This document shows positions 8,180 to 58,748 of a DNA stretch of 64,000 nucleotides, piece after piece (positions within the stretch are counted from its first letter, which is position 1; the number at the start of each line of letters is the position of its first letter). The notes below the pieces were generated by a model, which was not told where the DNA came from, did no database searches, and saw only the letters and a program-made list of their open reading frames with translations. The stretch covers positions 25,774,135 to 25,838,134 of the forward strand of contig NC_052146.1 in NCBI RefSeq assembly GCF_902713615.1, in the 5' to 3' direction. The position numbers were made by a program, and so were the translations under genes. This stretch comes from Scyliorhinus canicula. Its lineage: Eukaryota.

Positions 8180-8460
8180 TGAGTCACCGCTCAGCTAATT
8201 CTATTCTTGTTGTTTTTGATTGTGGCACCAGAGAGGAATCTGAAACGGAGCTAACTTGGAATTCAACACCTGTTACCTGTAACAAGATTCACTTTCTGTT
8301 CTGACTGGGAGCTTATTTCCCAGACTCTGGGTCGAGGCTTTGGGAAATGAAAGGTCAGCTCAGGTCTCAGTTGTTTGTTCTAACAGAGCAGGAGGGTGAG
8401 AGCTATCAGAGGGAAGGAGGGCAGTGACGTTCAGAAACTGTCTATGATAAGAAAAGGAGT
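8180..8460 (+). promoter_or_regulatory. Putative ISG15-A1 promoter
   Basis: AP-1 TGAGTCA 8180-8186, inverted IRF-like TTCACTTTC near 8288, GGAAATGAAA 8343-8352, TGACGTTCAGAAAC and an A-rich box. The proximal part aligns with the B promoter. Confidence 0.6.
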
Positions 8461-8685
8461 GAGGAGGGAGGTAGATATTCACTCACTTATTGAACAGAGG
8501 AAACACAGAAGATTCTGTGAGACACAGAGCAGTGGAAGCAGGCGGAGTTTTATTCACTGACTCCAGATCGGAGAGTTGGTGTCGAGCAAAACAGAGAAAA
8601 CAAACTGTACAGGAAGTGAACCTGTCATCAATCTGCAGATCAAAATTCTTCTGATTCACCTGAACTTGTGCATCCAGCAAGGATT

Positions 8686-9592
8686 GTGAGATATACTTCC
8701 CTTTTGTTTAAGAATCTCAATATTCTAATTCTAGTTTTTATATTGGGGTTTGAATCTCAATGAAATTCACAATTTAAAATAAGCTCTTAATATTCCCTGA
8801 AGTGGGACAGTGTTATAACCCACACAGGCCATACAGGGTTGGGATGATTAACTTCACCGTGGAGATTGCAGAATACGAGCTCCCCCGGCAGGGGGCAGGG
8901 GGACCTTTAACAACACTTGGCTTAGTCGAAATAGAAATGGTCAGTGAGGCAGCAACTGGAGAAGATCCAGTAGGGATCTACTGGAGCTGGATAACATAGT
9001 CATTGTAAAATAAAGTAAGTTTTTGTTTAGACCAACTCAGTGTGGACGTTTCGTTGCCCTTACAAAATACATTATAATTTTTTTAATTCTACGGCCATTT
9101 TCCTCCACTTACACACATTCCCTTACACTCTATTGATCAAGAGAAAACCCACAGAATTCCTGAGCCCATGTTCCCATCTCCTGATAAACCAAATTCCAAG
9201 ACTGAATCACATTACACAGCTCACTGAGAGCTACTACAGGCCGATGCCACTCTGCAGCTCAGCAGACAGATACTCCAGTTTCTGAATAGTTTAACAATGA
9301 TCAGGATACAGCAGCAAAGACACATCCAAATGCAAAAGGTGAACAGATAGGGAATCTGCTACTTTTTTCCAGGCTGGAAAGAAGCAGTTTGTGAAGATTG
9401 GTTTCTTTGGGATTCAGATATTGAGGAAGAAGCCAGATTTTGGGTTTATTGTAGCTGACATTTGAGTCTCAGTGTTTACAGCCAGTGACTGACACAATGT
9501 GTAGTGTGTATTAAATTCTCTCATTCATTCTTCGCAATTGACCTGCGAGATAAAGTGTCCCCATTAGTGACATCCTGTTCATTTCTCAACAG
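8686..9592 (+). other. Putative 5'-UTR intron of ISG15-A1
   Basis: Donor TT|GTGAGA lies near the position homologous to the B donor. Acceptor TTCATTTCTCAACAG ends at 9592, 12 nt before the ATG. The donor position is uncertain. Confidence 0.6.
8811..9064 (+). mobile_element. Possible solo LTR in the A intron
   Basis: TGTTA...TTACA ends and internal AATAAA. No convincing TSD. Second copy near 46655-46908. Confidence 0.35.
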
Positions 9593-9604
9593 CAATTTGA
9601 CAAG

Positions 9605-10072
9605 ATGAGACTCCAGGTGAAGTTTATGACCGGTGAGGATATTGAACTTGAGATCGACCCTTCCATCCAAGTCTCAGCTCTCAAGAAGATGATATATAAA
9701 AAAGCCAACGTTCCCCATTTCTGTCAGCGCCTGGTGGTACAAAATGGAAGCACAGAGGAGCTGAGGGATGACAAGAGGCTGTGTGACTACAATGTCTCTC
9801 CCAGCAATGTTGTCATGCTGATTGTCAAGAAGGAGGAGCGCATGCAGATATTCCTGAAGAACGAAAAGGGGAAATCAACTACATATGATGTTCTTCCCTC
9901 TGAGTCTGTTCAGGATTTTAGAGCACGCGTACAGCGGCAGGAGGGTGTCCCAGCCAATCAGCAGCGCCTGGTGTATGACAACAAACAGCTGGAGGATGGT
10001 CACTCACTCACTGACTACAATATTCAGTCTGAGAGCAACATCTCCCTTGCGTTGCGTCTACGAGGTGGTTAA
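9605..10072 (+). CDS. isg15: ISG15-like di-ubiquitin protein, type A copy 1 (155 aa)
   Basis: Two tandem Ubl domains. The second ([15 protein letters not shown]...QQRLVY...LEDG) resembles fish ISG15. Ends in a free LRLRGG. Intact ORF after a splice acceptor. Confidence 0.93.
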
Positions 10073-10893
10073 CATGAATTTTCAGCAATTAAGATCTCTG
10101 GATGTTACCAAAATAATTAATTTATCGTCTATCATTGATCATTTGTTTTTCATACGTTTCTGTTTTCTATTGTGTTGTTTGTTAGAGACACAAGATTGCC
10201 CAGTCACTGACCTTTTAATGATACCTTTGGTTCTTATTCCCAATTGCTCTGGTTCATTTTGTAAGTCCTGGATGTTTGTTCAACAGATAATGACTGGCGA
10301 GGGATTGATGCCAACTGAGGCCTGGATGCAGGTCACCTTCCTACATTCTCAGCCAGGAATAGATGCTGGTACAAGACATTGAACACAATTTTTACAAAGA
10401 ACAGCGACTTAATGAACAAGATAGGAGGAACGAGGGAACCAGTGATACATCGTGTCAGATTCTGATCAATGATTTATATTACAGCAGTTCAAATCAATAC
10501 TGCCTGATCACTGTTCTAAAGTTACTCTTAAAGATTCTTCAGAAGAGTTAAGATAATAATGGTCCAGTCCCTAATTCATTGACAGATCCAGACTGGCCTC
10601 CCATTCAGTGCTAATTCACCTTCTCACTCACAGCTGTTATGTCAATTCCAAAAATGTTTCACTTGCCAAACATTCCCCAGAAAAGATCAGAATAAGATCC
10701 ACAACCGTTTGCTTCCTGTTTCATTTACAAGTAGTTACTTTAGCCTGAATGTTTTCTTGGACAAATGGTTGGGTTCTGAATTGGGGTGTTTTAATCTGGG
10801 TGCTTCATGTTTTCCAATAGCTGAGGATATCAGGATTGCATTTTGTTCCTGCCAGATTGTTCAATGTGATTTGAAAGTAAAGCTGTTTATTTT

Positions 10894-10899
10894 AATAAA
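10894..10899 (+). terminator. Putative polyadenylation signal of ISG15-A1
   Basis: AATAAA followed about 30 nt later by GT-rich GTGTCTGTTGTTTTGTCTG. Retained in A2. Confidence 0.6.
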
Positions 10900-10949
10900 A
10901 ATGAAATGTGTGCTTACATCTCTCTGAAGTGTCTGTTGTTTTGTCTGCA

Positions 10950-11270
10950 TTAAAATTAAAATTAAATAGATCTTTATTATTGTCACAAGTAGGCTTACAT
11001 TAACACTGCAATGACGTTACAGTGAAAATCCCTGAGTCGCCACAATCCGGCGCCTGTTCAGGTACACTGAGAGAAAATTCAGAATGTCCAATTCACCAAA
11101 CAAGCACGTCTTTCACGACTTGTGGGAGGAAACCGGAGCACCCAGAGGAAACCACGCAGACACCGGGAGAACGTGCAGACTCCACACAGAGAGTGACCCA
11201 AGCCGGGAATCGAACGCAGGGCCCCGGCGCTTTGAAGTAACAGTGCTAACCATTATGTTACCGTGCCACC
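10950..11270 (-). mobile_element. V-core tRNA SINE with CTTGTGACAATAA tail
   Basis: Reverse-strand head GGGTGGCACGGTAAC and V core. Second copy near 48795-49114. Confidence 0.8.
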
Positions 11271-11844
11271 CATGAAAGAGGAGAGATTTCGCCCTTTGAC
11301 CCTGATCTGCCATTCAGCAAGATGACTGCTGATTAACCTCACTTCCACTTTCCCATACTCTTTCCATATCCCACATAAACCCACTCAACTCAGACATTTA
11401 AAATTAGGAATTTTACATTGCTCAGGGTACAGGTTATTGTGTGGCCAAAAGCACTTTTTCCACCCTCTCCTCAATCTGGACAAAAACTAAAATCATATAA
11501 TTGACATCACTGTTGGCAATGTGGAGATGCCATCGTGCTACCAGCCACAACACTGTAATCACTTCCGTGTTTATTCATAGTTAGGCTGACACAGGAAGTA
11601 TAAATAAAGGCCGTGCCTTTCATCATAGGGTCTGAGTCAGAATGGCCGAGTGACTCGGGGACATTTCATGGTAAATGTTTGCTAATTTGCATTCCAGTCA
11701 GTTACCTGTTGTAATGGCTGCAAAGAAATGACGCAAAGAACAAGGCAGGTGAAGAAACAGGGGCTTATTTTGGGCAAAACAACATTATATAGGACAATGA
11801 TACGAATGCTTTAAAACTCAACGGCTCCGAGACTCCATACGACC

Positions 11845-14840
11845 ATAAGACATAGGAGCAGAATTAGCTCACTCGGCCCATCGAGTCTGCTCCACCATTC
11901 AATCATGGCTGATATTTTCTCATCCCCATTCTCCTGCCATCTCCCCATAGCCCCTGATCCCCTTATTGATCAAAAACCTATCTATCACTGTCTCATAGAC
12001 ACTCAGTGATTTGGCCTCCACAGCCTTCTGCGGCAAAGAGTTCCACAGATTCACCACCCTCTGGCTGAAGAAATTCCTCCTCATCTCTGTTTTAAAGGAT
12101 CGTCCCTTTAGTCTGAGATTGTGTCTTCTGCTTCTAGTTTTTCCCACAAGTGGAAACGTCCTCTCCACGTCCACTCTATCCAGGCCTCGCAGTATCCTGT
12201 AAGTTTCAATAAGATTCCTCTTCATCCTTCTAAACTCCAATGAGTACAGACCGAACTGTCCTCATATGACAAGCTCTTCATTCCAGGGATCATTCTTGTG
12301 AACCTCCTCTGGACCCTTTCCAAGGCCAACACATCCTTGCTTAGATACGGGGACCAAAACTGCTCACACTACTCCAAATGGGGTCTGACCAGAGCCTTTT
12401 ACAGCCTCAGGAGTACATCCCTGGTCTTGTATTCTAGCCCTCTCAACATGAATGCTAACATTGCATTTACCTTCCTAACTGCCAACTGAACCTACACATT
12501 AACCTTGAGAGAATCGTGAATAAGGATTCCCAAGTCCCTTTGTGCTTCTGATTTCCTGAGCCCCTTCCCAGTTAGAATTTACTCTATGCCTCCATTTCTC
12601 CTTCAAAAAGGATAACCTCACACTTTTCCACATTGAATTCCATCTGCCACTTCTTTGCCCACTCTCCTAGCCTGTCCAAGTCCTTCTGCAGCTCGCCGGC
12701 TTCCTCAGTACTACCTGCCCCTCAGCAGATCTTTGTATCATCTACAAACTTAGCAACCGTGCCTCCAGTTCCTTCCTCCAGATCATTAATGCATATTCTG
12801 ACATCCTGAAAAAGACCCTTTATCCCCACTCGCTGCCTTCTGCCAGTCAGCCAATCCTCTATCCATGCCAGGATCTTACCCTGAACGCCATGGGCTCTTA
12901 ACTTATATAACAGTCTCCTATGAGGGAGCTTGTTAAAGGTCTTCTGGAAATCTAAATAAACATGTCCACTGGTTCTTCTTTGTCTAACTTCCTTGTCACT
13001 TCCTCAAAGAACTCTAACAGATTTGTCAGACATGACCTCCCCTTGATGAAGCCGTGCTGACTCAGTCCTATTTTATCATGCACTTCCAAGTACTCTGCGA
13101 TCTCATCTTTAATAATAGACTCTAACATCTTACCAATGACCGAAGTCAGGCTAACCGGCCTATAATTTCCACTCTTCTGCCTCACTCCCTTCTTAAACAG
13201 TGGTGTTACTTTGGCCACCTTCCAGTCCTCTGGGACCCTTCCTGCCTCCAGTGATTCCTGAAAGATCATCGCCAATGCCGCCACAATCTCCTGAGCTGTC
13301 TCTTTTAGAACCCTGGGGTGTAGTCCATCCGGTCTAGGTGATTTATCCACCTTCAAACCTTTCAGTTTCCTCAGAATCTTCTCCTTAGTAATGGTTACTG
13401 CACTCACCTCTGCCCCCTGGTTCTCCTGGAGCTCTGGCATCCCACTGGTGTCTTCCACCATGAAGACTGATGCAACGTAACTATTCACGGGGAATTTCAG
13501 GGACTATTCAGTTTGTCTGCCATTTCTTTGTTTCCTACTTCTCCATCCACATTTTCCAGTGTTCCAATGTCCATTTTTCCCTCTCTCTTACCTTTTATAT
13601 ATTGAAAAAACTCTTCCTATCCTCCTTTATATTACTGGCTATCTTGCACTCATACTTCATCTTCTTCCCCCTTATTGCTTTTTTAGTTGTCCTCTGCTCA
13701 CTTTTAAAGGCTTCCCAGTCCTCTGGCTTCCCACTAATCCGCGCCACCTTGTCTGCTTTTTCTTTAGCTTTTATGCGGTCCTTGACTTCCCTCGTCAGTC
13801 ATGGATGCCTTGTCCTCCCTTGAGCACATTTCTTCCTCCTTGGGATTAATTTCTGTTGTGCCTCCCGAATAACCCCCAAAGATTCCTGCCATTGTTATTC
13901 CACTGTCTTCCCTGCTCGGCTCCTTTTCCAATCAACTCTGGCCAGCTCCTCCCTCATGTCTTTGTAGTTACCTTTATTTAATTGTAATACCGTTACATCT
14001 GATTGCAGCTTCTCCCTCTCAAACCACAGGGTTAATTCTATCATATTGTGGTCACTGCTCCCTGAGATTCCTTCACCTTAAGTTCCCTAATCAAGTCTGC
14101 CTCATTACACATCACTAAATCCATAATTAACTGTTCCCTAGTAGGCTCTGTCACAAGCTTCTCCAAAAAACCATCTCTTATACTTTCCACAAATTCCTTT
14201 TCTTGGGATCCACGACCAACCTGATTTTCCAAGTCCACCTGCATTTGAAGCCCCCCATGATTATTGTAATATTGCCTGTTTTACATGCCTTTTCTATCTC
14301 CTGATTTATTTTCTGCCCCACATCCTGACTACTGCCAGGGGACATGTACATAACTCCCATCAGGGTCTTTTTACCTTTGCTCTACCCAGCTTTTACCTCA
14401 ACTCTACCCACGGAGATTCCATGCCTTCTGATCCTATATCACTCCTTGCTATCGATTTAACTTCATTCCTTACGAAAAATGCAAGCCCGCCCTCTTTGTC
14501 TATCTGCCTGTCCTTTCGATTGGACGCATATCCTTCGGTATTTAGATCCCAGCCTTGAGCCCCTTGCAGCTACGTCTCTGTGATGCCCAAAACATCACAC
14601 CGGCCAATTTCAATGTGTGCAACGAGCTCATTTACCTTGTTCCGTATATTGGCCGCATTAAGGTACAACACCCTCAATCCTGCATTGACGCCCTCCCTTA
14701 TCACACTTGTCACCTTTTTGCTCTGCCTGAGGGTGATGTAGTTCTTTTATTTTGGTTCTCTAATTCCCCTTCAGTTATTACACCTTCTAAGCTCACATTT
14801 TGGTTCCCCCCCCCCCCCCCCATATTAGTTTAAATCCTCC
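11845..14840 (-). mobile_element. Degenerate CR1 LINE (EN and RT)
   Basis: KSPRPDGLHPRVLKE, GNYRPVSLTSVIGK, QHGFIKGRSCLTNLLEFFEEVT, RRNFFSQRVVNLWNSLP, TCTTATG-type tail. Confidence 0.92.
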
Positions 14841-16080: not shown

Positions 16081-19000
16081 GACTTCCGGTGGCAACGTGT
16101 AGGTGGAAGTCGCACGTTAGGTGGCTCCTGTTAGAGTCTTTGTATTTTTGGTCTTTATCGCCAGTCTCAGGGGTACGTTTTGGATGAGTTGTTGAGGGAA
16201 GTCATAAGGAGTCAGTGGAATGTCGAAGTTCCAGAAGGAAGGTCCTGGAAAGAAGTGGGTGAGTGAATTTCCGCCGGCGAGTGTTGCTGTGAGTCCAGCA
16301 GGAGGAAAGATGGCAGGGGGCTGGTTCGTCAGGTGGGGCCGCTCCCATCACGGTTGAAATTCTGACCGGGGTGGTGTCGGGGCAGTTTGAAAGGCTGTTC
16401 ACCAAACATTTAGAGGCGCTTCGGAGGGAGATGACGGATTGGCTGAAAGAGTGGGTGGAGGAGATGCTTGCCCCGATAAAGGTTGCATTAATGAAGCTGT
16501 TGTTTGAGGTGCGGGACCAAGGAGAGAATGAAAGGGGTAAAGGAGCATTGTCGCAACTTCGCGACCAGTTCACCTCGATGGGTGAGGAGCTGCGCAGGGT
16601 GGCGGAGGTCAATAAAGGGCTAAGAGCCATGGTGGGCGACCTGGAGAACAGGTCAAGGAGTCAGAATTTGTGGATCTTGGCTGTGCCCGAAGGGGTGGAG
16701 GGCACAAGGCTGACCCGAGTATTTTGCGAACATGTTCTCCATGTTGGTGGGGGAGGGGGGAAGAACCCTCCCTCCATGAGTTGGACAAGGAGCATTGGTC
16801 AGTCCAGCTGAAGCCTGGAATAAATGAGCCACCAAGCACGGCCATAGTCTGCTTCTACAGCTACCACGTGAAGGGGAAGGTTTTGAGCTGGGCGAAGCAG
16901 AAGCGGAAAATGAAATGGGAAGACGTTGGGATTGGTATATACCTAGATCTGACAGTGGAATTGGTGAAAATACGGCCGGCCTTTGGACGGGTGAAGGCAG
17001 CACTGTACAGCAGTGGGGTGAGGTTCAGAGTGGTCGCCCCAGCGGAGCCACGAGTGACTCACAACTCAAAGGCCTTTTACTTTGAGACGGCGGAGATGTT
17101 CTTTAATGCTGAAGAACTGGGACTGAGATGAGAGTTGGGATCTGAACTTTGATGGTGTGGACTGGGAATGTTTTTTTTAGCTTGTTTCCTAGATTGATTT
17201 TTTGTCAAGGGGGCGTTTTTGCATGTGTTCTTGTTTCTTGTTATGCATGTGTTTTTATGTTGTTTAGGGGATGCGGTCTCCCTACTCTGGCGGTATGGCT
17301 AGGGGGGGTTGGAGTTGGCGGTTGGTGGGAGTGTGGGATGGGGCGTTGGAGGGGGTTTGGTATGATGATCCACGTTGCTGAGGGTGTGGTGGGGTGGACG
17401 GGGGGCTCTCGCAGGGGTCACCACGCTAGCGAATGAAGGTTGGGTAGTGAACGGCAGTGTGGAGGGGGGAGGGGCCGTGGGCATTGGAATCTGGTCGAAC
17501 AGGTTTCAATGGACCTGGAAGGTGTGAATGGTTGGCGGAGCAGATTGATACTGGGTGAGGTGTTTGCAAGAGGACGTGGATGGGATTTTGGGAAAGGGGA
17601 TGGGGGTCGGGGATGGGTAACAGAGGGAGGGGGCCGGTCCAGTGGATGGGTAGGGCGTGGGGTAATGGTGATGGCAGTTAGGAGGGCAGCGAGGGGGGGG
17701 TGAGACACTCCTGGTCAGAATGGTGACGTGGAACGTGAGGGGGTTAGGGATACCCATGAGTTGATTTTGTGGGGTGGGAGGGATTGGAAGACAGCGCTCG
17801 AGCCGAGGGTGGAAATGTCCCAGCCAAGCTCGCTGACCCCGTCCGGGGGGTGGGGGGTGGGGGGGGGGGGGGGGGGGGGCAGGCATATGAGGGAGGTAGG
17901 GGTTGACCCATGGAGATTTTTACACCCGAGGGATCGGGAGTATTCTTTTTTATCCCGCAGCGCAATGTCTTCTCCAGGATTGACTTCTTTATGGTGGGGT
18001 AGGCGCTCTTGGATGGAGTTAAGAGGGCCGAGCAATCAGCAATTGTGATCTTGGACCACGCACCACACTGGATGGACATGGTACTGGAGAAGGGCTGGCC
18101 CAGAAACTGGGGTGGAGGATGGATGTGGGGCTGTTGGCGAACCGGAGATTCTGTGATAAGAAAGGAAGGTAATTGAGGAGTATGTGGTTCAATGTTTGGC
18201 CGAGGTCTCGCCGTCAGTGGGTTGGGAAGCCCTGAAGGCAGTGTTGAGGGGGGAGTGATCTCTTTTCAGGCTAAGGTGGATTGGGAAGAGAGAGAGGAAC
18301 ACCAACGGGTGATAGAAGAGGTTTTGGAGGTGGATGGGAGGGATGCGGGGGACCCGGATCCAGGTCTCCTGGTAAAGAAGGAGCTGCAGGTGAGGTTCGA
18401 CCTGCTGTCCGGAGGGAAAGCGAGGCATCAGCTGAGCTGGGTGAGAGGGACAGTCCGTGAATAGGGGGAGAAGGCGTGTTGTATGTTGGGAAGCCAGCTT
18501 CGCAGGAAGGCCACAGCAAGGGACATTGTTTGGTTTTGGGATAGGATGGGGGAGTTGGTGGTGACTCTGGAGTGGATTAACAAGGTATTTGAGGAGTTTT
18601 ATAGGAGCTTGTATAAGTCGAAGCCACCAGAGGATGATTGGGAGGTAAGGGTTGTTTTGGAGGGGTTAGAGTGCCCGAGGTTGAGTGAATTGGGGAACGT
18701 GGGGCTGGAGGAGCCAGTGGGGCCAGAGGAAATGTAGGTGGCAATTGAGAAGATGCAGGCGGGGAAGGTGGCAGGGCCGGATGGGTTCCCGGTTGAATTT
18801 TATAAGAAATTTAAGGACAAGCTGGCACCATAGTTGGTGGAAATGTTCGAGGACGCGATGGTCAGGGGGAGTTTGGTGAAAATGATGGGACTGGCCTCCA
18901 TTTCGTTGCTGCCTCAGAAGGATAAGGACCCGGTGGAGTGTGGGGCTTCCAGGCCCATATCTCTGCTGAATGGGGACGCCAAGATATTGGCAAAGATGTT

Positions 19001-21022
19001 GGCGTTATGGTTGGACACGTGCCTTCCGAGGGTGATTGGGGAGGATCACACGGGGTTTGATAAGGGCAGATATGTGGCTGCTGAATGTGGTGCTTTCTCC
19101 AGCAGAGGGAAGGGATTTGGAGGTGGTGATGGCATTAGATGTGGAGAAGGCGTTTGATCGGTTGGAGTGGAGTTATTTGATCGCAGTGTTGGGGAAATTT
19201 GAAATGATGCACAGTTTGTGAAATGGGTGCAGTTGTTGTATAAGGAGCCGATGGCGAGCGTGCACATGAATGATAAGAATTGATGGTATTTTTTATTGCA
19301 CTGCGGAACGAGATGGGGTGCCCCATGTCTCCCCTTCAGTTTACATTAGCTATCGAGCCCTTGACCATTGCCATTCCGTCTGGCAGTGTCTCACTTTAGG
19401 TATCTGGGGGTTCAGATAGCCGGGGACTGGGCAGGTATTCGGAAGTTGAATTCCTCCAGCTTGGTGGGGAGGGTGAAGGCCAACTTGGTGAGGTGGGAGG
19501 GTGAAGGCTGATTTGTCGAGTTGGCACAATCTTCCTCTGTTATTGGCGGGCCGGGTTCAGGGAGTGAAGATGAAGACATTTTCTCGTGATTTTTGTTTCT
19601 GTTTCGATGCCTGCTGGTCTTTTTGCCAAAGACATTTTTCAAAGGGGTTGACCGACTGATCTCTTTGTTTGTCTGAGTAGGGAAGGTGGCCAGGATAAGG
19701 AAGGTGGTGTTGATGAGGGAACAGCAGTCAGAGGGGTTGGGCCTTCTGAATCTGATGTCCTATTATTGGGTGGCGAATGCAGAGAAAGTTCAGGGGTGGG
19801 ATAGGGAGACGGGGGCTTTGTGGGAAGGATGGAGGCGAGCTCATGTCGGGGGTCGAGGGAGCAGACACTGGCAATGGTACCACTCCCGATGGCCCCAGGG
19901 AAGTATTTGGTAGGTCCAGTCGTGGTGGCCATGCTGAAGATTTGGAGGCAGTTTCAGCAGCATTTCAGGTTGGGAGTGAGGTCGGGGGGATGCCAATCAG
20001 GGGAAATCACGGATTTGAGCTGGGGAGGATGGGTGTGAGTTTGCAGGGATGGGAGGAGAAGGGGATTCCCTCAGATGAAGCATTTGTTTCTGGGAGGGTG
20101 TTTAGGTTGGGGCGGCAGGAGAGATTCCGGTGCATGCCAGTGCTGGACTTTGTGAGGAAGGTATTCCCAATAGCACGTGCCTCATCGTTGCTGAAGGTGG
20201 TGCTGTCAGCAAGGGGAAGGGGGTTTTGGAGAAGGGGATTGTCTCAGCGATTTATGGGAGGATTTTGGAGGAGGGTAAGGTGTCTATGGAGCGGGGGATA
20301 AGGCCAAGTTGGAGGTAGAGCTGGGTCAGCACTGGAAGAGGGGTTTTGGTGTGAGGTGCTGTGGAGGGCGAATGCCTCGACCTTGTGTGCGAGGCTGGAG
20401 CTGATGCAGCTGAAGGTAGTGTGCAGAGCCCACCTGACCAAATCAAGGATGAGCCGGCTGTTTGAGGGGGTGGATGAAGTCTGTGAGCAACGTGGGAGGG
20501 GCCCTGTGAACCATGTACATATCGTTGGGTCTGCCCAGAGTTGGAACGGTTTTGGAGGTTGATTTCAGCACCATTTCGAGGCTGCTGCATGTGGATGTGG
20601 AGCCCTGTCCCCTAGAAGCCATATCCGTGTTCTCCGACCAGCCAGAACTGCAGATGGGTGTGGGGACAGATGTCTTTGCCTCGCACGTCGGTCTTGTTGA
20701 GGAGGGGGTTAGCTTCTCCACCCTGTGCCTCGGCATGGCGGGGGGACCTGCTGGAATTCTTAGCCCTGGACAAGGTGAAATTGCTCTCGGGGTTGGGGGG
20801 GGGGGGGGGGGGGGGGCAACGAGTGATGGGTTCTACAAACTTTGTGGTTTGTTCATTTTGCATTTTGGGGAGTTGGTTACCATTAACTGCTGAGGGAGGG
20901 GTGGGAGGTAGGAGGGATGAAGGGGCAGGCATGGGTGGGTGGGGGGGTTTAAAGTGTTGGGTGGGTTATTGTTGCAAAATGTTAAAATGTTGAAAATTCA
21001 GAATAAAAATACTTTTTAAAAA
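16081..21022 (+). mobile_element. Near full-length degenerate L1-clade LINE inside the RTE EN domain
   Basis: GACTTCCGG 5' end. ORF1 LENRSRSQNLWILAVPEGVEG. ORF2 VTWNVRGLG, RPISLLNGDAKILAK, ALDVEKAFDRLEW. AATAAA at 21002. Degraded TSD (AACAATAAACTTGT / GACAACAAACCCGT). Confidence 0.88.
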
Positions 21023-22865
21023 GACAACAAACCCGTCAACCGACCCTCAGAGCTTCCTTCCGGTATCAATGAGTGCCTCAGGACCCTCTGTCTGCACCTT
21101 ATGAATAACCAGCGGGCAACATTTGTGACTGCCTACACCCCAACCCTTGATGCCAATGACAAGCCCAAAGAAGGCTTCTACCCCACCCTGGACATCGTAC
21201 TCTCCAACACTCCTGAGGAAGATACGATCATCCTCCTTGCTGACTTCAACAGCAGGGTTGGAAGAGACTTCTAAATTCTTGGAAGGAATCATTGGAAAGG
21301 AAGGAGTTGGGAATTGCAACTCCAACAGTGTTCTTCTGCTCACTAAATGCACAGAACACCAGTTTGTTGCATTTCTCCGCCAAATAGACAAGTTTCAGAC
21401 TTCCTGCAGACACCCACGATCAAAGAACTGGCAGATGATTGACCTCATCATCATCTGATCCCGAGGCAAAAGGACGATCAATGCAGATGCCTTCTAGACC
21501 ACCAGCTCATCTGTTCCACTGTGCCCATCAAACACGCAGCGAAAGATGAAGAAACAACTCAGTAAAAAGATCAACATTGAGCGGCTTCATGAGTCAAGCA
21601 TGCTCATGAATTTCCAACACTGTCATCTCCAAAATCTCCAAAGTGTCCATTCTAATGGAGTAGAGGAAAACTGGAAAGAGCTGAAGACAACCATCATCCC
21701 AAGCTGTGAAGAATCCATGGTCTACAAGTCCAGGAAACACCAAGACTTGTTTGACAAGAATAACCACACCATCGAGGGTCTCATTGACAAGCGGAGGAAA
21801 ACTCTCCAGTCCTGGCAAAATGGAACAACCAACAAGGCAAAGAAGAGAGCTCATCACTCAGCCAAGGTGGAGGTACAAAGGAGAACCAGGGAAATCAAGA
21901 ACGAATGGTGGACTGAGAAGGCTAAGGGACTGCAACTCCTCGCCAACAAGCACGACAAGCGGACCTTCTTCAGTGCCACCGAGACAATATATGGACCCAA
22001 TACCATAGGCCTCAAACTGGTGCAGAGTAAGGACAGAATCCTCTTGGGAGACAAAGAAAACATAGGCCTTTGATGGAGAGAACACTTCAAAGAACTCCCG
22101 AACTGTGATACAAACATAGATGAAGGTGTGCTTGAGGAAATCCCCAATTCCCCACCAAAGATCATCTTGGACTCCCTGAAAACTTGGATGAAGTTGAAGC
22201 CGCCATTAAACAAACGAAGAATGGAAAAGTTGCAGGTGTGGATGGGACTCTATCAGAGATTTTCAAGTTTGGAGGAGAAGAGATCACCGGTCATCTCCAT
22301 CAGCTGTCCCTGAAAATTTCAGACAGAGAAAAAATTCCTGTCATCACCGTCATCTTCAAGAAAGGAGACAAAGTGGACTGTGGCAACTACCGAAAATCTC
22401 TCTACTCTCCATCGCGGGAAAGATTGTTGCCTGAATCCTTGCTAGCTCCCTTCTCCCAGTATCTGAAGAAATCCTCCCGGAAAGTAAGTCTGGGTTCCGA
22501 TCAAACTGTGGAACTGTGGGCATGATTTTCACTGATCCACAACTTCAAGAGAAATGCCAGGAGCAACATTCTCAACATGGCCTCCATCGATCTGACCAAG
22601 GCTTTTGACTCAGTCAATGGGGAAGTGCGATGGAAGACCTTGCCAAAGGCCCATTGTCCAGAGAAATTCAGCAACATCCTCTGTCTCCTCCACGATAAGA
22701 TGTTGCTGACAGTCCTCACCAACGGAAATAAGACAGAAACTTTTGAGGTCAAGATTGGAGTCAAGCAGGAATGTGTTATCACCCCCACCCTTTTCTCCAT
22801 CTTCATCGCCATCATCCTTAACCTTGTCAAGACACGTTTCCCAGTGGAGTGGACATCGCCTACAG

Positions 22866-23920
22866 CAGAGAATCCCAACTGGTGTGCCATGAAGGCCTCA
22901 CAAGTGTTCCGCAAAATACAGTTCAAAATGATTACATATTAGTACAATATAAACTAAATCTAATCTTCGTTTTCAGCTCTGTGATTGGCATCTCCCAGAT
23001 GAACCTTAGGCCTCCCACACATGCCGGCTGGGAATGAACCACACATTCATGGTTCAGAATCCTTCACAATGGTCATGCGCATGGGCCTAACCGATGGAAA
23101 AAATCAGAACTGCACATGTGTGACCCTTTCCGTCTGGCACACGCATTGTTCAGATTACCAACATAAAACATTGCAAACCACGTATGTACTGACCATTCTG
23201 GTGTCAATGGCGCTTGCGCAGGAGATCCCACAGAGTTGAAGGCAAAGGCCCCTTGCGGCTGCGCAATAAGCAAGAACACAAAAATGCCTCAAAAGCCTGG
23301 GAGATACGAGGGATTCAGGGAGAGACTGGGGGAAAAAAGAGGAGAAAAGACAGAGGGAAGTGAAAAAAAAAATATTCCCAGTAAGGGAAGAACTCAGGGG
23401 GAAGAAACAGGAACCAATAAAGTTAAGAAAAGGAGAAACAGTCTCCATGATTATATTTGACATTATAAACCCTTCAGGAGACCTGAGAAGGTGATACAAA
23501 CACAGGCTTATTCTTCAGGCAGAGTGGCATACAGCACATCGATCTCAGCCAGGACCACCGATCTCACCAGTCCCAATTTGGGCCGGCTTTTAAGTGTTAT
23601 TTTCACGGACTCCAGCCGCTCGGCCTCTACCCCTCAGCAGAGGAGCTCGTATTCACTGAGGTCCCACAGGGAGATCAATTGGGTCGTCCACGTGGGTCTT
23701 GTGAGGTTATTACAGACATGCAAGTTAAGGAAGCGATGGCTTTCATTGTAAACTTCTAAAACCTAATAAAAATTGTATTAAATAGTGGCTTGACATGTTT
23801 TTGGAGGTTTCAGAAATAAAAAGCTTTAGCAAGAGGGTAGTTGGGGAAAATAGGAGGTGTACCTCAAAATGTTTACAGTATAAAAGTGTGCCATGGCGTA
23901 AAAAATGTTAGGAACCACTG
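22866..23920. mobile_element. hAT/Charlie-like non-autonomous DNA transposon
   Basis: Ends CAGAGAATCCCAAC ... GTTAGGAACCACTG are imperfect TIRs. 8-bp flanks are GCCTACAG/GGGTACAG. The RTE motif GVDIAYR|VDGKHFNL rejoins on excision. Confidence 0.7.
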
Positions 23921-25887
23921 GGGTACAGGGTGGATGGAAAACATTTCAATCTCAATGGGCTGAAATCCAAGAAGAAAATGACGCTGACATCACTCGTGGA
24001 ACTTCAGTTTGCGATGACATCGCCATCTCCACTCTCTTGGAAGAGAATTTCCTGGCCATGCTGATGCTCGACACTCTCACGGAAGATTAACAAAGAATCA
24101 GCCTCAGCCTCAAAAAGATTCAAGTCCTCTACCAACCCGCCCCAGGGCAAGCCTGGTCACTCTCTCCATCAAGATTAAAACCAGACAAAACATGGAACAT
24201 TTCTCCTACCTGGGCAGCCACATTTCATCTAAGGCTGATATCGATCCAACATTGTATCCAATCTATGAGCTCCTCCTTTGAACGAGGGACTTTGACGACT
24301 GTGAAATCCGTGCTGACACCAAGATCCTCTTCCAACTCTTCTGTATGACTCAAAAGCTTGGACTAGATAGACACCACTTCAAGGCCCTAGAGAGGTACCA
24401 TCAACGGACTAGCAAATGGTGGGAAAGGAAGGCCTCAGGGGCGCTCCATATACTACCAAAAACAAGTAACAAGGTGCCTAGTTCCCATGCTATTGGAGAT
24501 GGACTCTACATATCAGCTGGGAGGACAGGCGTACGATCATCAGAGTCCTTGAGGGAGCCAAGAGCACCAGCTTTGAGGCCATGATCATCCACAACCAACT
24601 CCACTGGGCCGGCCTGATGCTTAGGATGTCAGAGTGCCGACTGCCAAAGCAAATCTTCTTCGCCCAGCTCAAGGAAGGTTCCCGAACAAGAGGAGGACAA
24701 AGAAAGTTCTTCAAAGATACATTGAAGGCTTTCTTCAAGAAATGTAGCATAGACAGTAAAGCCTGGGAGACCCTTGCTCAGAAGAGACCTGCTTGGAGGA
24801 ACATCCTGATTGAGAGAACATAATTCTTCCAGGACACCCAACAACAAAACCAGACCAGGAAAAGAACCTGAGAAAGTAATACCAGAGATCTTGGATTGGA
24901 TTGGCTTATTGTCACATGTACTGAGGTACAGTGAAAAGTGTTTTTCTGCATGCAGCTCAAACAAATCACTTAGCGCATGAAAAGAAAATACATAATAGGG
25001 CAACACAAAGTACATAATGTAAATACATAGACACCGGCATCGGGTGAAGCATACAGGAGTGTATTATTGATCAAATCAGTCTATAAGACGGTCGTTTAGC
25101 AATCGCAAGGCAGCGGGAGGTGTAGATAGAGTCAATGGGTGGGAGGCAGGTTTATGTGATGGACTGGGCGGTGTTCAAGACTCTCTGAGGTTTCTTGCGG
25201 TCTTGGGCCGAGCAGTTGCCATACCAGGCTGTGATGCAGCCAGATTGGATGTTTTCTATGGTGCATCTGTAAAAGTTGGTAAGAATCAATGTGGACATGC
25301 CGAATTTCCTTAGTTTCCTGAGGAAGTATAGATGCTGATGTGCTTTCTTTGTGGTAGCATCGGCGTGGGTGGAGCAGGACAGATATTTGGAGATGTGTAC
25401 CCCTAGGAATTTGAAACTGCTAACCATCTCCACCTCGGCCCCATTGATGCAGACATGGGTGTGCAGTACTTTGCTTTCTGAAGTCAATGACCAGCTCTTT
25501 AGTTTTTCTGACATTGAGGGAGAGATTGTTGTTGTTACACCACTCCACCAGGTTCTCAATCTCCCTCCTGTATTCTGACTCGTCGGTGTTGGAGTTCCGA
25601 TTCACTGTGGCCATGTCATCAGCAAACCTGTAGATGGAGTTGGAGCCAAATTTTGCAATGCAGTCGTCTGCGTAAAAGAAGTATAGCAGGGGTCGAAGTA
25701 CGCAGCCTAGCGCGGCCCCGATATTGAGGACTATCATGTGTAGTTTTTACCTCACCACTATTCTTAGAATTCCCCCTATACCAAAATGGGTAGGTTTATT
25801 CTAAATGGTGAGCAGGGATTCTCACTCCCCGACTCCTACGCAGACTTAGGCGGGTGCTATTCAGGTCAAACTAGTGTCTCAAGTTGT

Positions 25888-26231
25888 CATAGAATTTACA
25901 GTACAGAAGCAGGCCATTCGGCCCATCGAGTCTGCACCGGCTCTTGGAAAGAGCACCCTACTCAAGCCCACACCTCCACCCTATCACCATAACCCAGTAA
26001 CCCCACCCAACACTAAGGGCAATTTTGGACACTGAGGGCAATTTATCATGGCCAACCCACCTAACCTGCACATCTTTGGACTGTGGGAGGAAACCGGAGC
26101 ACCCGGAGGAAACCCACGCACACACGGGGAGGATGTGCAGACTCCGCACAGACAGTGACCCAAGCCGGATCGAACCTGGGACCCTGGAGCTGTGAAGCAA
26201 TTATGCTATCCACAATGCTACCGTGCTGCCC
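25888..26231 (-). mobile_element. HE1-like SINE
   Basis: Reverse GGGCAGCACGGTAGCA head, V core and CR1-type tail. Confidence 0.88.
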
Positions 26232-26814
26232 ACTTATCCCCCAGTATAACCCGTATCTTCGCAGAAGACTTTTATTTACTCACCACTTAGTAACTTACAC
26301 ATGGGTCCAGGTTGCTAAGTGACCTAAAATAAACTTTTTAAAGAAAATACTAATAACCACTTTTTCAGGTTATCAATTTGAACTTAACTTTATTTTCAAG
26401 TTAAAAGAGAATAACTACTTTTACAGAAAGGTAAAAAGATCTTTTCCTGTTCGGACCAGTTGCAGACTTTCAAGTCTCTCTTGACAATCAATTTTCTTTA
26501 ACTTTGGGTCTTCTGTTTGATTCTCTGGGTGGCTCGGTCTGTCAATGTTGCTCGCCCATCACTGAGGAAGATTGGTGGCTCTCTGCTCATCTCCATCAGA
26601 TTTTATAGGAATTTGGGGCCCCTTAATCTCTGCACCTGGCATCCTATAGCCTGGCTGCTTGACAGTTTGAAGGTTAGGTTTTATCGATTAAGAAGCATTG
26701 CGCTGCCCTAACCACAATCGTGCAGCTACCTCCTCACCAGCTCGCCATTCCTGACTGTAACTTTTCCCGCTTTTCTTGACATGTAATTAATCTGAGTCTT
26801 AGTTATCATTTTTA

Positions 26815-27154
26815 CATAGAATTTGCAGTGCAGAAGGAGGCCATTCGGCCCATCGAGTCTGCACCGGCTCTGGGAAAGAGCATCCCACCCAAGGTCAATA
26901 CCTCCACCCCATCCCCATAACCCAGTAACCCCACCCAACACTAAGGGCAATTTTGGACACTAAGGGCAATTTAGCATGGCCAATCCACCTAACTTGCACA
27001 TCTTGTGGGAGGAAACCAGAGTACCCGGAGGAAACCCACGCACACACGGAGAGGATGTGCAGACTCCGCACAGACAGTGACCCAAGCCGGAATCGAACCT
27101 GGGACCCTGGAGCTGTGAAGCGATTGTGCTATCCACAATGCTACCGTGCTGCCC
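26815..27154 (-). mobile_element. HE1-like SINE
   Basis: Same head, core and tail as 25888-26231. Confidence 0.88.
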
Positions 27155-27540
27155 TTAACTTTTGGTCTTTTGGATTTTGGATTTCTTATGTGTCTCTTAA
27201 TGAGTTTTCTTTGATTTGACTCGGGTCATTTTTGGGTTAAGCTAATGTCATATTAGCGTTATCTCTTCCGACTCCAACGTTATTTGCCTTGTTCATCTTC
27301 TACAAGGTTTTAACTTCAAAATGATATAAGCTATAGTGTAGCCTTGTCACCTTTTAGTTTTTCTTAATTTGTAAATCAGTTGTTTCATTTTATTACCTGT
27401 ATCAGCAACTTTTCATACTTGGCAGTTGTTCCTTATCTTTACACTTTAGATTCTGGCTGTCTTTCTTAATTGTTCAATAAATTCCATTGCTTCAAGATTT
27501 GTGAAATACTGTTTCCTTTCATATAGCTTTTAAGTTAACA

Positions 27541-27710
27541 GGGGCTGGTTTAGCTCACAAGGCTAAATCGCTGGCTTTTAAAGCAGACCAAGCAGGTCAG
27601 CAGCACGGTTCGATTCCCGTACCAGCGCCGGAATGTGGCGACTAGGGGCTTTTCACAGTAACTTCATTGAAGCCTACTCGTGACAATAAGCAATTTTCAT
27701 TTCATTTTCA
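27541..27710 (+). mobile_element. Short tRNA SINE (GGGGCTGGTTTAGC head, GTGACAATAAG tail)
   Basis: A-box-like TTTAGCTCA, B-box-like GGTTCGATTCCC, (TTTCA)n tail. Confidence 0.8.
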
Positions 27711-28314
27711 TAAGAGTTTAAGTCAATCCAAGGACTTTTCTAATTTGTAGATTATAATGAAGCTCCTATCTGTTCTCTTCCCTGTCTGTGAAGTTGTCTG
27801 CTTTCAAAACAGGCTGCTGCTGCTGTTAACCCCTTGTGGGACTTCTCCCTTTGATACATGTAGCCTCAGACACTCTTAGTGTTACTTTCATGTTTCAAAT
27901 GTCATTTTCTTCCGAGTTTTCACAACACGTGGAGGAGGTGTTGTTTATTCTTACTGATTGTGGTCTATCGGTCAGAAAGTCGAGGATCCGGTTGCAGAGT
28001 GAGGAACCAAGTGCTAGGTTTTGGAGCTTTGATATGAGCTTGGCTGGGATTATAGTGTTGAAGGCAGAGCTGTAGTCAATAAATAGGAGTCTGACATTGG
28101 AGTCCTTGTTGTCGAGATGCTCCAGGGATGAGTGTAGGGCCAGGGAGATGGCTTCTGCTGTGGACCGGTTGCAGCGGTATGCGAATTGCAGTGGATCTAG
28201 GTATTCTGGGAGTTTGGAGTTGATGTGCCTCATGACCAACCTCTCGAAGCATTTCATTGCAATCAATGTCAGGGCCACCGGACGGTAGTCATTGAGGCTC
28301 GTTGCCTGGTTCTT

Positions 28315-29040
28315 AGAATAAAGAACAGTACAGCACAGTACAGGCCCTTCGGCCACAATGTTGTACCGACCATTTATCCTAATCTAAGATCACCCTAACT
28401 GACACCCGTTCAATTTACTGCTGTCCGTGTGCCTGTCCAAGAGTCGCTTAAATTGTCCTAATAACTCTGACTCCACCACCCCTGCTGGTAGAGAATCCCA
28501 CGCACCCACCATTCTCTGTGTAAAGAACCTACCTCTGACATTTCCCCTATACCTTCCTCCAATCACCTTCAAATTATGTCCCCTCATTACAGCCATTTCC
28601 ACCCTGGGGAAAAGTCTCTGGCTATCCATTCTATCCATTCCTCTCATCACATTGCATACCTCGATCAAGTCACCTCTCTGCCTTCTTTGCACCAGTGAGA
28701 AAAGCCCAGGGTCCCTCAACCTTTCTTTGTAAGACATGCCCTCCAGTCCAGGCAGCATCTTGGTAAATCTCCTCTGCACCCTCTCCAAAGCATCCACATC
28801 CTTCCTATAATGAGGCGACCAGAACTGGACACAATATTCCAAGTGTGGTCTAACCAGGGTTTTATAAAGCTGCAGCAAAACCTTGCGGCTCTTAAACTCA
28901 ATCCCGCGGTTAATGAAAGTCAACTCACCATGCGCTTTCTTAACAACCCTATCAGCCTGGGTGGCAACTTTGAGGGATCTATGGACCCCAAGATCCCTCT
29001 GTTCCTCCACACTTCCAAGAATCCTGCCTTTAACCCTGTA
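28315..29040 (-). mobile_element. 5'-truncated CR1 LINE
   Basis: LYKTLVRPHLEYCVQFWSPHYRKDVDALERVQRRFTKMLPG. Longer copy at 55939-56760. Confidence 0.92.
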
Positions 29041-29084
29041 GTGTTCAGTCAAAGATGTGGCTCTAGGATTGGGCTCATCAGCAA

Positions 29085-29127
29085 TGCAAGGACTCGCAGA
29101 GCCTGCATATTGTCCCCATGTCTGCGT

Positions 29128-29158
<31 letters not shown>

Positions 29159-29320
29159 ACAAGTTCTGCTTGTTTGCTTGTTAGGTGAATTGGACATTCT
29201 GAATTCTCCCTCTGTGTACCCGAACAGGTGCCGGAGTGTGGCAACTAAGGGCTTTTCACAGTAACTTCATTGCAGTGTTAATGTAAGCCTACTTTTGACA
29301 CTAATAAAGATTATAATAAT
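29085..29320 (+). mobile_element. V-core SINE fragment upstream of the B promoter
   Basis: GTCTGCGTGGGTTTCCTCCGGG core and GCCTACTTTTGACACTAATAAAGATTA tail. Confidence 0.75.
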
Positions 29321-29580
29321 GATTACAAAACCCGTGACCAGTATCACAGACAGTCATGCTTGTTAGTGAGTGATCGCTGAAGAACATTTAAATGGTTACA
29401 CATAAATGCAGCGTAAATGCTTGCTTTGTGTGTTTTAAAAGAAACTTTAAAAATGTAAACATTGAGTCAAGTTGATATGTGTAGGGGTAAAAAGTATTCA
29501 AACGGCTGAGGGAAATTTAGCATCATCACATTGCCCCCTGCCCCACCCACCCTGACATTTCGGCTGAAAAAGCTGGGAAG

Positions 29581-29598
29581 GAAATGGAAAGTGAAACT
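29581..29598 (+). promoter_or_regulatory. Distal triple-GAAA ISRE of ISG15-B1
   Basis: GAAATGGAAAGTGAAACT fits GAAANNGAAANNGAAACT, the same layout as the mammalian ISG15 ISRE. Confidence 0.85.
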
Positions 29599-29658
29599 GA
29601 TCAGAGGCTGTTTGCTGCTGACTGAGATCATTTGTCAGACTCTGCGGGGGTGTTTTCG

Positions 29659-29670
29659 GAAATTGAAACT
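29659..29670 (+). promoter_or_regulatory. Proximal ISRE of ISG15-B1
   Basis: GAAATTGAAACT, followed by GC box GGGGCGGG 29687-29694, TGACGT 29743-29748 and A-rich box AATAAAAG 29767-29774. Confidence 0.8.
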
Positions 29671-29982
29671 TTAGCTCAGATCTGGAGGGGCGGGTTTATG
29701 GCAGAGCCAGGAGTGTTGGGCAATTAGAGAGCAGCAAAGCTGTGACGTTCGGAAACAAGCTGGGCGAATAAAAGTAGAGGGAGCCAGGCAGAGAGACAGA
29801 GAATTGTTAAACGGAGACACACAGCAACATACAGAGCAGCAGAAGCAAAGAGTTTAATTCACACATCTCACCCAGATCTGAGAGTCGGTGCGAAGATAAA
29901 CAGAGAAGGTGAACTGCACAGAAACGGTGCATCAGAAAATATCCAGCTGTTTACCTTTCCTGGATCTGTGCACCCTGCACCT

Positions 29983-30874
29983 GTAAGTTCATTCTGCTGT
30001 TTGGGGATTCTTTTAATATTCTATTTCTCATTCTGTTTGGGGGCTATTTTAATATTCTATTTCTGGTGTGTAAATTGGGATGTTCTGAATCTCAGACGCA
30101 ATTTATGAAAAATGATTGTTAAAACTGGGTGGGAAAAATAAAACAGTACTTTTAAACTTTCAAGCTTGTTGGAGACAAGGTAGTATCTTTATGTGAAGTT
30201 CGATGTCCGTTATTCCAAGGGAGTTATTCACATATTTGAAATCAATGCATTCACCATTTATTAACCAAAATTACAAATTTTTAAAATCTAAAATAATAAG
30301 ATAGGTTAGGGGTGAATTGATATGGGGGGGAGGGGTCTGAATGTGTTATGTTCAATTTCACTCAGAATTAAATATAAAATTATATCATTTGAACGTGGTG
30401 AAGGTACAAGAGAATAAATATCATTGCAAATTTAAATAGCAAGAGAGATGTAAGTGAGATAAAACATCGCTGTCTCCCCGGGGCAGAACTAGATTTTGGG
30501 CAGTCTGACAAATCCACTTTCATCTCAGTGTAGTATTTAAAACAAACACATTTGAGAAAGATTCTACACAACGAGCAAAGTACTGCGTGAGTGACATCGA
30601 GGTAGCATTTGACCCAGTGAGACCTGACAGCCCCTATACCACACACCCACCGGCTGTTCAGTGTGCACAAAGTCCATAGTTTGTCCCATTGTGAATAAAA
30701 CATTGAAAGGAAGTTTGATTGAGTTGGGAGTAGAATAGGTGCAGAATACACAATATATTAGTTCCCTCGATTCTGTCACTGTCTGGACAATGTATTGCAT
30801 GTTTAAAATTATGTGATTGATACACAATACAAAACATCTCCACGGTCACTGACATTTTGTTCATTTCTCAACAG
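29983..30874 (+). other. Putative 5'-UTR intron of ISG15-B1
   Basis: Donor CT|GTAAGT, branch-like CTGAC and acceptor TTTTGTTCATTTCTCAACAG. A 5'-UTR intron is typical of fish ISG15 genes. Confidence 0.78.
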
Positions 30875-30886
30875 CAATTTGACAAG

Positions 30887-31354
30887 ATGAGACTCCAGGT
30901 GAAGTTTATGACCGGTGAGATTATTGAACTTGAGATCGACCCTTCCATCCAAGTCTCAGCTCTCAAGAAGATGATATATGAAAAAACCAAGGTGGCCCAT
31001 TTCCGTCAGCGCCTGGTGGTACAAAACGGAAACACAGAGGAGCTGAGGGATGACAAGAGGCTGTGTGACTACAATGTCTCTCCCAGCAATGTTGTCATGC
31101 TGATTGTCAAGAAGGAGGAGCGCATGCAGATATTCCTGAAGAACGAAAAGGGGAAAACATCTACATATGATGTTCTTCCCACTGAGTCTGTTCAGGATTT
31201 AAAGGCACGCGTACAGCGGCAGGAGGGTGTCCCAGCCAATCAACAGCGCCTGGTGTATGAGGGCAGACAGCTAGAGGATGGTCACTCACTCGCTGACTAC
31301 AATATTCAGTCTGAGAGCACCATCTTCCTTACGCTGCGTCTACGAGGTGGTTAA
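30887..31354 (+). CDS. isg15: ISG15-like di-ubiquitin protein, type B copy 1 (155 aa)
   Basis: Two Ubl domains. [14 protein letters not shown]...[12 protein letters not shown] is close to canonical ISG15. ISREs upstream. The ATG is at 30887; the ORF-track start at 30857 is intronic. Confidence 0.95.
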
Positions 31355-31953
31355 CTATGACAGCACCGATATAGAGTGTTAGATATTACACAAATTTCCC
31401 ATAAAACTCAATTACATTTTTCACAATGGTGCAAGGTCTATGAGGTTAAGGGTTTCAGTCAGTGAGTAAATAATACTTTGACTGTCACTCTTGGTTTGAT
31501 TCATTTATAACATTAGGGTGTTCATCACATGTTTGTGTTTGCTGACCAATCAGGCCATTACCTGCACTCTGCCTGCAAGAGATGTTAGGCAAAGCAGGGG
31601 AAGGTGTCCTTAGAACAGAAAGGTATTTTTTTATTTTCCAAATGGGGCCAAAGACAACAAAATATTTTTCTTTGCAATGTGAATTCAGGTTAGGCCCAAG
31701 TCTGGTGATTGTGGGAATTCGCTATGAAGGAGGTTGTGTGAGTGTCAGTGTTAATCTAATGTACATTTGCTCACAATATGAACATTATTCCAGTTCTTAT
31801 TGTCACTCAGGTTTGCCACAAGGTAGTTGATATGTAAAAAGATGAAATGGGACATTTTTTATTGTTTTGTACTGAAATGAGCCCAAATTAACTGTACATA
31901 ATGGTTAGCAAAAATGTTGAATGAAAATTTTCTCAGTTAACAATGATTATTCT

Positions 31954-54990: not shown

Positions 54991-54991
54991 T

Positions 54992-58736: not shown

Positions 58737-58748
58737 CAATTTGACAAG

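Follow-up and report, generated by a model that had tools for sequence, protein, structure and literature searches.

In the Amy duplicates of Drosophila, coding regions are reported to be nearly identical, whereas strong divergence of the flanks sets in abruptly where the coding region ends. Another described case is that of the ATP1A1 genes of Leptodactylus frogs, in which tandem duplicates are homogenised by ongoing gene conversion except for a few trans-specific amino-acid differences between the paralogues (Mohammadi et al., bioRxiv 10.1101/2020.08.04.234435). Here we describe a locus of this sort in a 64,000-nucleotide (nt) stretch of chromosome 1 of the catshark Scyliorhinus canicula (NC_052146.1, positions 25,774,135 to 25,838,134 of the forward strand), which we refer to as the window and whose own numbering is used below. 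It contains two A-B pairs out of a five-pair tandem array of genes that encode ISG15-like di-ubiquitins, and we consider it highly probable that A and B are ancient duplicates whose coding tract has been homogenised by gene conversion, with two short patches escaping it. Trans-specific paralogue differences within conversion-homogenised tandem genes are also what makes ATP1A1 the closest documented analogue. There, however, a role for selection and the function (toxin resistance) were demonstrated with engineered proteins, whereas in the catshark selection and a functional difference are proposed; in addition, the catshark duplication would be far older than its homogenisation, and the promoters of the two types differ, interferon-stimulated response elements (ISREs) being present only in B. 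As in the Amy duplicates, concerted evolution is confined to the coding region, but the catshark tract has internal type-specific patches, and the pair itself has been amplified into a five-unit array.

A first-pass annotation of the window had described near-identity between the genes of the first pair, A1 and B1, as running from the splice acceptor to just past the stop codon, and this is what we observed. Self-BLAST found A-B similarity only at 9568-10077 against 30850-31360 (94.1%), perfect identity setting in at 9576, 17 nt inside the intron, and ending at 10073, one base past the TAA. These boundaries are common to all ten copies, that is, to five A/B pairs. The counts given for the coding sequence (CDS) were also exact: A1 and B1 show 27 differences in 468 nt, spread over 24 codons, of which 19 have replacements and five have silent changes (V36, N47, Q119, L129 and L150), codons 13-31 and 50-90 are identical, and the silent change at Q119 is private to B1. 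The reported clustering of the differences was reproduced as well, at a modest level of significance. The longest identical run measures 124 nt (P = 0.006), and four of the five silent changes lie within two codons of a replacement (P = 0.033; 4/4 and P = 0.009 without the B1-private site); the variance-to-mean ratio of the differences in 36-nt bins was not significant (P = 0.10).

It had been assumed that the homogenised unit is the coding exon. The CDS is indeed homogenised, as its low silent divergence, its clustering by species and residue K78 indicate (see below), but the tract is bounded by the CDS and not by the exon, because exon 2 runs about 850 nt further as non-homogenised 3' untranslated region (UTR). 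At its other end the tract takes in 17-25 nt of intron, and exon 1 is excluded from it, so that the expectation for RNA-mediated conversion or a retrocopy, an exon-only tract with UTRs and without intron, is not borne out. Contigs assembled from DNA (a second S. canicula sample and a run labelled another organism) diverge from the A reference exactly at 9568 and 10073, from where they continue in B-intron or B-3'-UTR letters. Run X14 ('organism B') lies about 2% from A1 in the A flanks, a distance scarcely greater than that between array units, and its contig was used for boundary confirmation only. Over 9652-10071, the letters of an X14 contig are A-type at codons 125-129 and 145 and B-type at codon 99 (2 of its 12 differences listed).

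Two stretches inside the tract, codons 32-49 and codons 145-150, behave differently from the remainder. In the related S. torazame, A-type, B-type and one recombinant protein are found, and in both Scyliorhinus species A is distinguished from B by residues 32, 34, 35, 37, 40, 49, 145, 147 and 149. All nine sites that cluster by type lie inside the two patches and none outside, while the two sites that cluster by species both lie outside (Fisher p = 0.018). Lamniform sharks also have two types, 'a' with D12, KKAN at 32-35, S49 and C60, and 'b' with EKTK or ERTK at 32-35, R40 and N49; the 'a' states are derived, because outgroups carry the b-like EKTK. Within the 18 residues of the 32-49 patch, neither A nor B differs between the two Scyliorhinus species, A and B differ from each other at six positions, and A differs from lamniform 'a' at three and from lamniform 'b' at six to seven. 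In the remaining 131 residues, A and B of S. torazame differ at only four positions, compared with 9-10 for the same type between species; either Scyliorhinus type differs from lamniform 'b' at 15-21 and from lamniform 'a' at 21-29 positions, and lamniform 'a' from 'b' at 21-25.

Phylogenetic trees of the two partitions are accordingly incongruent. In the maximum-likelihood tree of the 131 residues, proteins group by species (S. torazame A+B with support 80/90, S. canicula A+B with 87/75), and clades forced to unite A of S. canicula with A of S. torazame, or all a types, are rejected by the approximately unbiased (AU) test (p-AU 0.043 and 0.032, respectively). In the maximum-likelihood tree of residues 30-51, Scyliorhinus A groups with lamniform 'a' (90/90). 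The prediction that coding sequences would cluster by species and flanks by type thus came out in a modified form, at the protein level: proteins outside the patches follow species, and the 32-49 patch follows type across orders. Moreover, every one of the ten S. canicula copies carries K78, whereas residue 78 is N in all outgroups and in either type of S. torazame; K78 marks a species-specific change shared by paralogues. In Carcharodon, the b gene lies 9.2 kb upstream of the a gene and another 155-residue ubiquitin-like gene 7.3 kb downstream, all on the same strand, an a/b tandem arrangement that matches that of the catshark. On these grounds, both types would predate the split of lamniform and carcharhiniform sharks, and the 32-49 patch of A appears to be a relic of the old 'a' gene. 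At 145-150, all other sharks, lamniform 'a' included, read TIFLxL.

The divergent patches had all been taken as protected in the first-pass annotation. That holds for codons 32-49 and 145-150, which are type-specific in both Scyliorhinus species, but not for the others. The differences at codons 91-92, 99 and 125-127 are specific to S. canicula, those at 105-106 are private to B1 and B2, that at 136 is private to A1, and codon 12 varies among A copies. These differences, which S. torazame lacks or which only B1/B2 or A1 carry, are young, post-homogenisation changes rather than protected relics. At codons 105-106 of B1 (31201-31206) and B2 (59063-59068), TTT AGA has become TTA AAG, with changes at CDS positions 315, 317 and 318; this may be a multi-nucleotide mutation or a micro-conversion.

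What keeps the two patches apart is a separate matter. The first-pass annotation proposed that selection keeps A and B distinct, and the tests for this were negative: the ratio of replacement to silent divergence between A and B (omega) is about 1.0, a McDonald-Kreitman-style table of 14 replacement and 3 silent changes among the 17 sites fixed between intact A and B copies, against 16 and 9 polymorphic among copies, is not significant (p = 0.30), and dense local mismatches could block conversion even with no selection at work. Selection as the force protecting the patches is nevertheless plausible, and we suggest that it, rather than mismatch density alone, is responsible. The most serious alternative accepts conversion and lets the patches persist without selection, either because conversion missed them by chance or because dense mismatches (eight in the 54 nt of the 32-49 patch) block heteroduplex formation, the mosaic then being inherited in both Scyliorhinus species. 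On one hand, this would fit with the two test results just given, with the similarity of silent (dS, 0.19) and replacement (dN, 0.16) divergence in the patches, with the very few sites that prove conversion after the species split, and with the fact that zero cross-species changes in an 18-residue patch are not unexpected at a background of about 7%. On the other hand, K32, A34, N35 and S49 are shared with lamniform 'a' while both sides of the patch have been replaced by b-like sequence, and the flanking regions have been re-homogenised within S. torazame (the four differences mentioned above) without the patches being erased. In addition, the single recombinant seen (XP_072342755.1 of S. torazame), which has A-type residues 32-49 and B-type residues 145-149, ends in LRLQGG instead of LRLRGG. 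We regard persistence without selection as a real possibility, though one that we rather doubt.

Several observations weigh against the reading of ancient duplicates homogenised by conversion with two escaping patches, the omega value and the McDonald-Kreitman-style result among them. The cross-species comparison used proteins only, in short partitions (22 and 131 columns) and with groups named after the data had been seen, and its AU p-values reach only 0.03-0.04. Direct A-B exchange after the species split is indicated at one or two sites only (78 and 103). A Sawyer/GENECONV-type permutation with nine copies from the genome returned a single significant A-B fragment (columns 309-359, global P = 0.012); as a recent conversion tract this fragment was rejected, as shared ancestral states set off by private changes in other copies explain it equally well. 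Two of the five A copies are pseudogenes, A3 with two 1-nt insertions and A5 with its start ATG changed to ATC and a deletion of about 143 nt, while all five B copies are intact. Finally, the A exon 1 predicted by homology (8388-8685) has zero RNA depth in run X7, which covers the A 3' UTR at about 117, though such a coverage hole proves nothing.

The contrast between coding and flanking divergence bears on a second alternative, namely that there was no conversion and that old duplicates were kept alike by purifying selection alone. It is true that ISG15-like proteins are conserved among sharks (60-80% identity). However, A-B dS (Nei-Gojobori) is 0.05-0.07, with a dN of 0.06, whereas the promoter and exon 1 of A1 and B1, described previously as aligning loosely and found to be 70% identical over 380 aligned sites, are separated by a Kimura two-parameter (K2P) distance of 0.38. 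Coding dS, at about 0.06, is thus six times below the promoter distance. With a dS as large as that distance, some 31 silent differences should have accumulated, compared with the six observed (binomial P = 1.4e-9). Within types, dS (0.01-0.06) matches flank K2P (0.01-0.05), so that silent sites are under no special constraint; together with the low A-B dS, this means that purifying selection alone cannot explain the tract. The protein data point the same way: lamniform 'a' and 'b' differ at 21-25 of 131 residues and the Scyliorhinus types at 4-10, and Scyliorhinus paralogues cluster by species. Purifying selection without conversion is therefore very improbable, and gene conversion of the coding sequence is well supported. 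The comparison of dS with flank divergence, where K2P is at least 0.38, also agrees with the earlier suggestion that the duplication itself is old.

A third alternative would make B (or A) a recent copy of the coding segment alone, a retrocopy or segmental insertion in an unrelated locus, with flanks that were never homologous. The sharp boundaries close to the CDS ends would be expected in this case. Yet A and B appear to be old duplicates of an entire gene, with homology that reaches from the promoter as far as the poly(A) site, as three regions outside the tract are collinear and significantly similar: promoter and exon 1 (z = 58 against shuffles; A1 aligns here with B1 29624-29924 at 66.7%), the first 45 nt or so of the intron (z = 7.9), and the distal 230 nt or so of the 3' UTRs with their poly(A) signals (AATAAA; about 62% identity, z = 22). 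The first-pass statement that the 3' UTRs do not align at all is correct for their proximal part, which, like the body of the intron, gives local alignments at shuffle level, but not for this distal part. Furthermore, the intron is retained, with 17-25 nt of it in the tract, no poly(A) or target-site features were seen, and overwriting the coding segment of an older paralogue is, by definition, gene conversion. We consider a copy of the coding segment alone highly unlikely. Insertion of a transposable element as the cause of the sharp 5' boundary was also considered and ruled out, as the last 500 nt or so of the A intron were found in A copies alone, and the entire B intron in B copies alone. 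Nor do recognisable repeats account for the failure of these regions to align. An assembly artefact of collapsed or chimeric tandem copies, to which a repetitive array with a 500-N assembly gap (4236-4735) might give rise, is hardly credible, given that independent DNA contigs pass from A into B letters exactly at both tract ends, that RNA contigs show both types, and that NCBI protein models of both types exist in two species.

Ancient duplication followed by conversion of the coding tract would therefore have to be pictured as follows. A and B would be whole-gene duplicates so diverged in promoters, introns and UTRs that these regions can barely be aligned. Between direct tandem neighbours 11-21 kb apart, non-allelic conversion in the Scyliorhinus lineage would have overwritten a coding tract of about 500 bp again and again, mostly from B to A in the stem of the genus (the direction is the likelier one rather than an observed one), and would still have been active at about the time when the two species separated, or later. 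Tracts would stop where homology stops, at the splice acceptor and just past the stop codon. Two patches would have escaped, codons 32-49 with the old 'a' states and codons 145-150 with an A-specific novelty on the face corresponding to H68 and V70 of ubiquitin, and the remaining A-B differences would have arisen after the last homogenisation. The latter probably took place shortly before the five-fold amplification, because fixed A-B differences outside the patches (about 8 in about 434 nt, by hand count from the fixed sites) are similar to the divergence of about 2% between array units.

Features of the A-B pairs in the window (coordinates in window numbering)
Feature	Coordinates	Strand	Remarks
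A1 CDS	9605..10072	+	predicted 155-residue ISG15-like protein, two ubiquitin-like domains, C-terminal LRLRGG
B1 CDS	30887-31354	+	468-nt open reading frame
A2 CDS	47448..47915	+	3 differences from A1
B2 CDS	58749..59216	+	2 differences from B1, both silent
A1 homogenised (putative conversion) tract	9568..10073	+	last 25 nt of intron, 12 nt of 5' UTR, CDS and 1 nt; 94.3% identical to B1 30850-31355 (506 nt)
B1 homogenised tract	30850..31355	+	patch of codons 32-49 at 30980-31033, patch of codons 145-150 at 31319-31336
A1 patch, codons 32-49	9698..9751	+	8 of the 27 differences; type-specific in both Scyliorhinus; A state shared with lamniform 'a'
A1 patch, codons 145-150	10037..10054	+	NISLAL, TIFLTL in B; type-specific in both Scyliorhinus; A state only in Scyliorhinus
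A1 promoter and putative non-coding exon 1	8309..8685	+	assigned by homology to B; no canonical ISRE
A1 intron	8686..9592	+	putative donor GTGAG starts at 8686; repeat resembling a short interspersed nuclear element (SINE) at about 8805-9069
A1 3' UTR	10074..10922	+	type-specific, transcribed; 10922 is followed by the poly(A) tail; loose alignment with B restricted to 10717-10950
Three ISRE motifs, B1 promoter	29581..29670	+	present in all five B copies (B2: 57433-57522)
B1 non-coding exon 1, minimum extent	29820..29982	+	spliced RNA contig
B1 intron	29983..30874	+	donor GTAAG starts at 29983; only in B copies
B1 distal 3' UTR with AATAAA	32183..32417	+	loosely homologous to A1 10717-10950
A-unit segment	4736..17749	+	repeated at 41974-54968, 96-97.5% identity
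B-unit segment	27830..36231	+	repeated at 55455-63939, 97-98% identity

Both types are expressed, as unitigs with A letters (depth 106) and with B letters (depth 281) over 9668-9780 occur in the RNA; in this one RNA data set, the level of A transcripts is about one third that of B. In one spliced RNA contig, a B-type exon-1 end (...CCTGCACCT, nearest to B2 and B4) is followed directly by the base next to the AG at 9591-9592, with which exon 2 begins; this confirms the acceptor as well as the B donor at 29982|29983. From the A 3' UTR, RNA contigs cover 10052-10654 at depth 117 and 10776-10922, the latter followed by A11. Words from the predicted A exon 1 are present in four runs of one study, and A transcripts may start elsewhere than in this exon. 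The motif GAAANNGAAA was sought in all A promoters and found in none; at the aligned A-promoter site (GGGAAATGAAAGG, compared region 8290-8450), a 1-nt deletion breaks the GAAANNGAAA spacing. The SINE-like repeat in the A1 intron has more than 1255 candidates genome-wide that match query positions 116-380.

The array consists of ten copies in the order A, B, A, B and so on over about 157 kb, and extends past the window (chromosome 1, 25849210-25940797). A 32-mer quoted in the first-pass annotation has exactly four matches in the window (9576, 30858, 47419 and 58720), each of which precedes one 468-nt open reading frame. A stretch of about 10 kb within the DNA between A1 and B1 (17750-27830) has no counterpart between A2 and B2 (54968 to 55455). 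The intergenic DNA contains minisatellites as well as reverse-transcriptase fragments, the latter at 27895-28356, just beyond that stretch, and elsewhere between the genes. The window begins (1-3037) with a GC-rich minisatellite of about 3 kb, with some 194 copies of the 16-nt unit AGCGGGAGCAGCGGCC, and a 46-nt tandem repeat lies 3' of the B genes, in 8.2 copies after B1 (33973-34349) and 13.2 copies after B2 (61450-62056). The array adjoins OAS/OASL-like genes (exons with OAS1_C domains) at 25690631-25739693 of chromosome 1, 35-85 kb upstream of the window; in Cetorhinus, an a-type gene overlaps a gene model that has OAS and ubiquitin domains.

The identity of the array genes as ISG15-like di-ubiquitins is suggested by several features of the predicted protein. 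The Pfam ubiquitin domain matches it twice (E = 2.7e-33), residues 80-155 align one to one with ubiquitin 1-76 and residues 1-74 with ubiquitin 1-71, and LRLRGG followed by the stop codon is found in every intact A and B copy. Among named proteins from groups other than cartilaginous fishes, ISG15 of teleosts and of a turtle matches best (40-47% identity), NCBI calls the shark proteins 'polyubiquitin-like', and the catshark protein is matched from end to end by a solved di-ubiquitin-like chain of the OAS family (7sbi, E = 3e-23). Features shared with ISG15 of bony vertebrates are the pair of ubiquitin-like domains, the LRLRGG at the C terminus, ISRE matches (in the B-type promoter) and a CDS that lies entirely in the last exon. 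In contrast to that ISG15, the shark protein stops exactly at GG and its C-terminal domain is much nearer to ubiquitin (QQRLVY; R where human ISG15 has W123), and the gene is multi-copy, with two ancient types, and lies near OAS-like genes.

The positions of the type-specific residues make a functional split between A and B plausible. With the numbering of the C-terminal domain such that residue x corresponds to ubiquitin residue x-79, residues 145, 147 and 149 correspond to ubiquitin T66, H68 and V70 (and residues 125-127 to A46, G47 and K48), and shark residues 147 and 149 to F149 and N151 of human ISG15. UBE1L specificity is presumed to be set by a group of residues that includes F149, and the counterpart of N151 in NEDD8 is V70 of the hydrophobic patch (PMC2423471); recognition by USP18 also uses the hydrophobic patch of the C-terminal domain (PMC11811815). 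A bolder extension, which we put forward tentatively and consider unlikely on present evidence, would be that an a/b pair with different promoters has stood in tandem since before the lamniform/carcharhiniform split, that catshark A was almost wholly overwritten by B, and that the six to nine surviving residues are the minimal determinants of a functionally distinct second ISG15 (e.g. with altered recognition by E1, USP18 or viral deISGylases), actively defended against conversion.

In terms of mechanism there is nothing new here: concerted evolution confined by diverged flanks is textbook material, and the catshark genes are a new example of a known process. In the literature searched, no paper links ISG15 with sharks or with gene conversion, and none mentions multi-copy, two-type ISG15 arrays in cartilaginous fishes. 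Conversion has acted here as a kind of natural mutagenesis screen, which erased neutral differences between the old ISG15 types and left a short list of residues. Those at 32-40 and 49 in the N-terminal domain, together with 145, 147 and 149 on the C-terminal face that matches ubiquitin H68 and V70, may define a functional split. That cartilaginous fishes carry multi-copy ISG15 arrays with two ancient types and different promoters bears, in turn, on the evolution of the ISG15 system.

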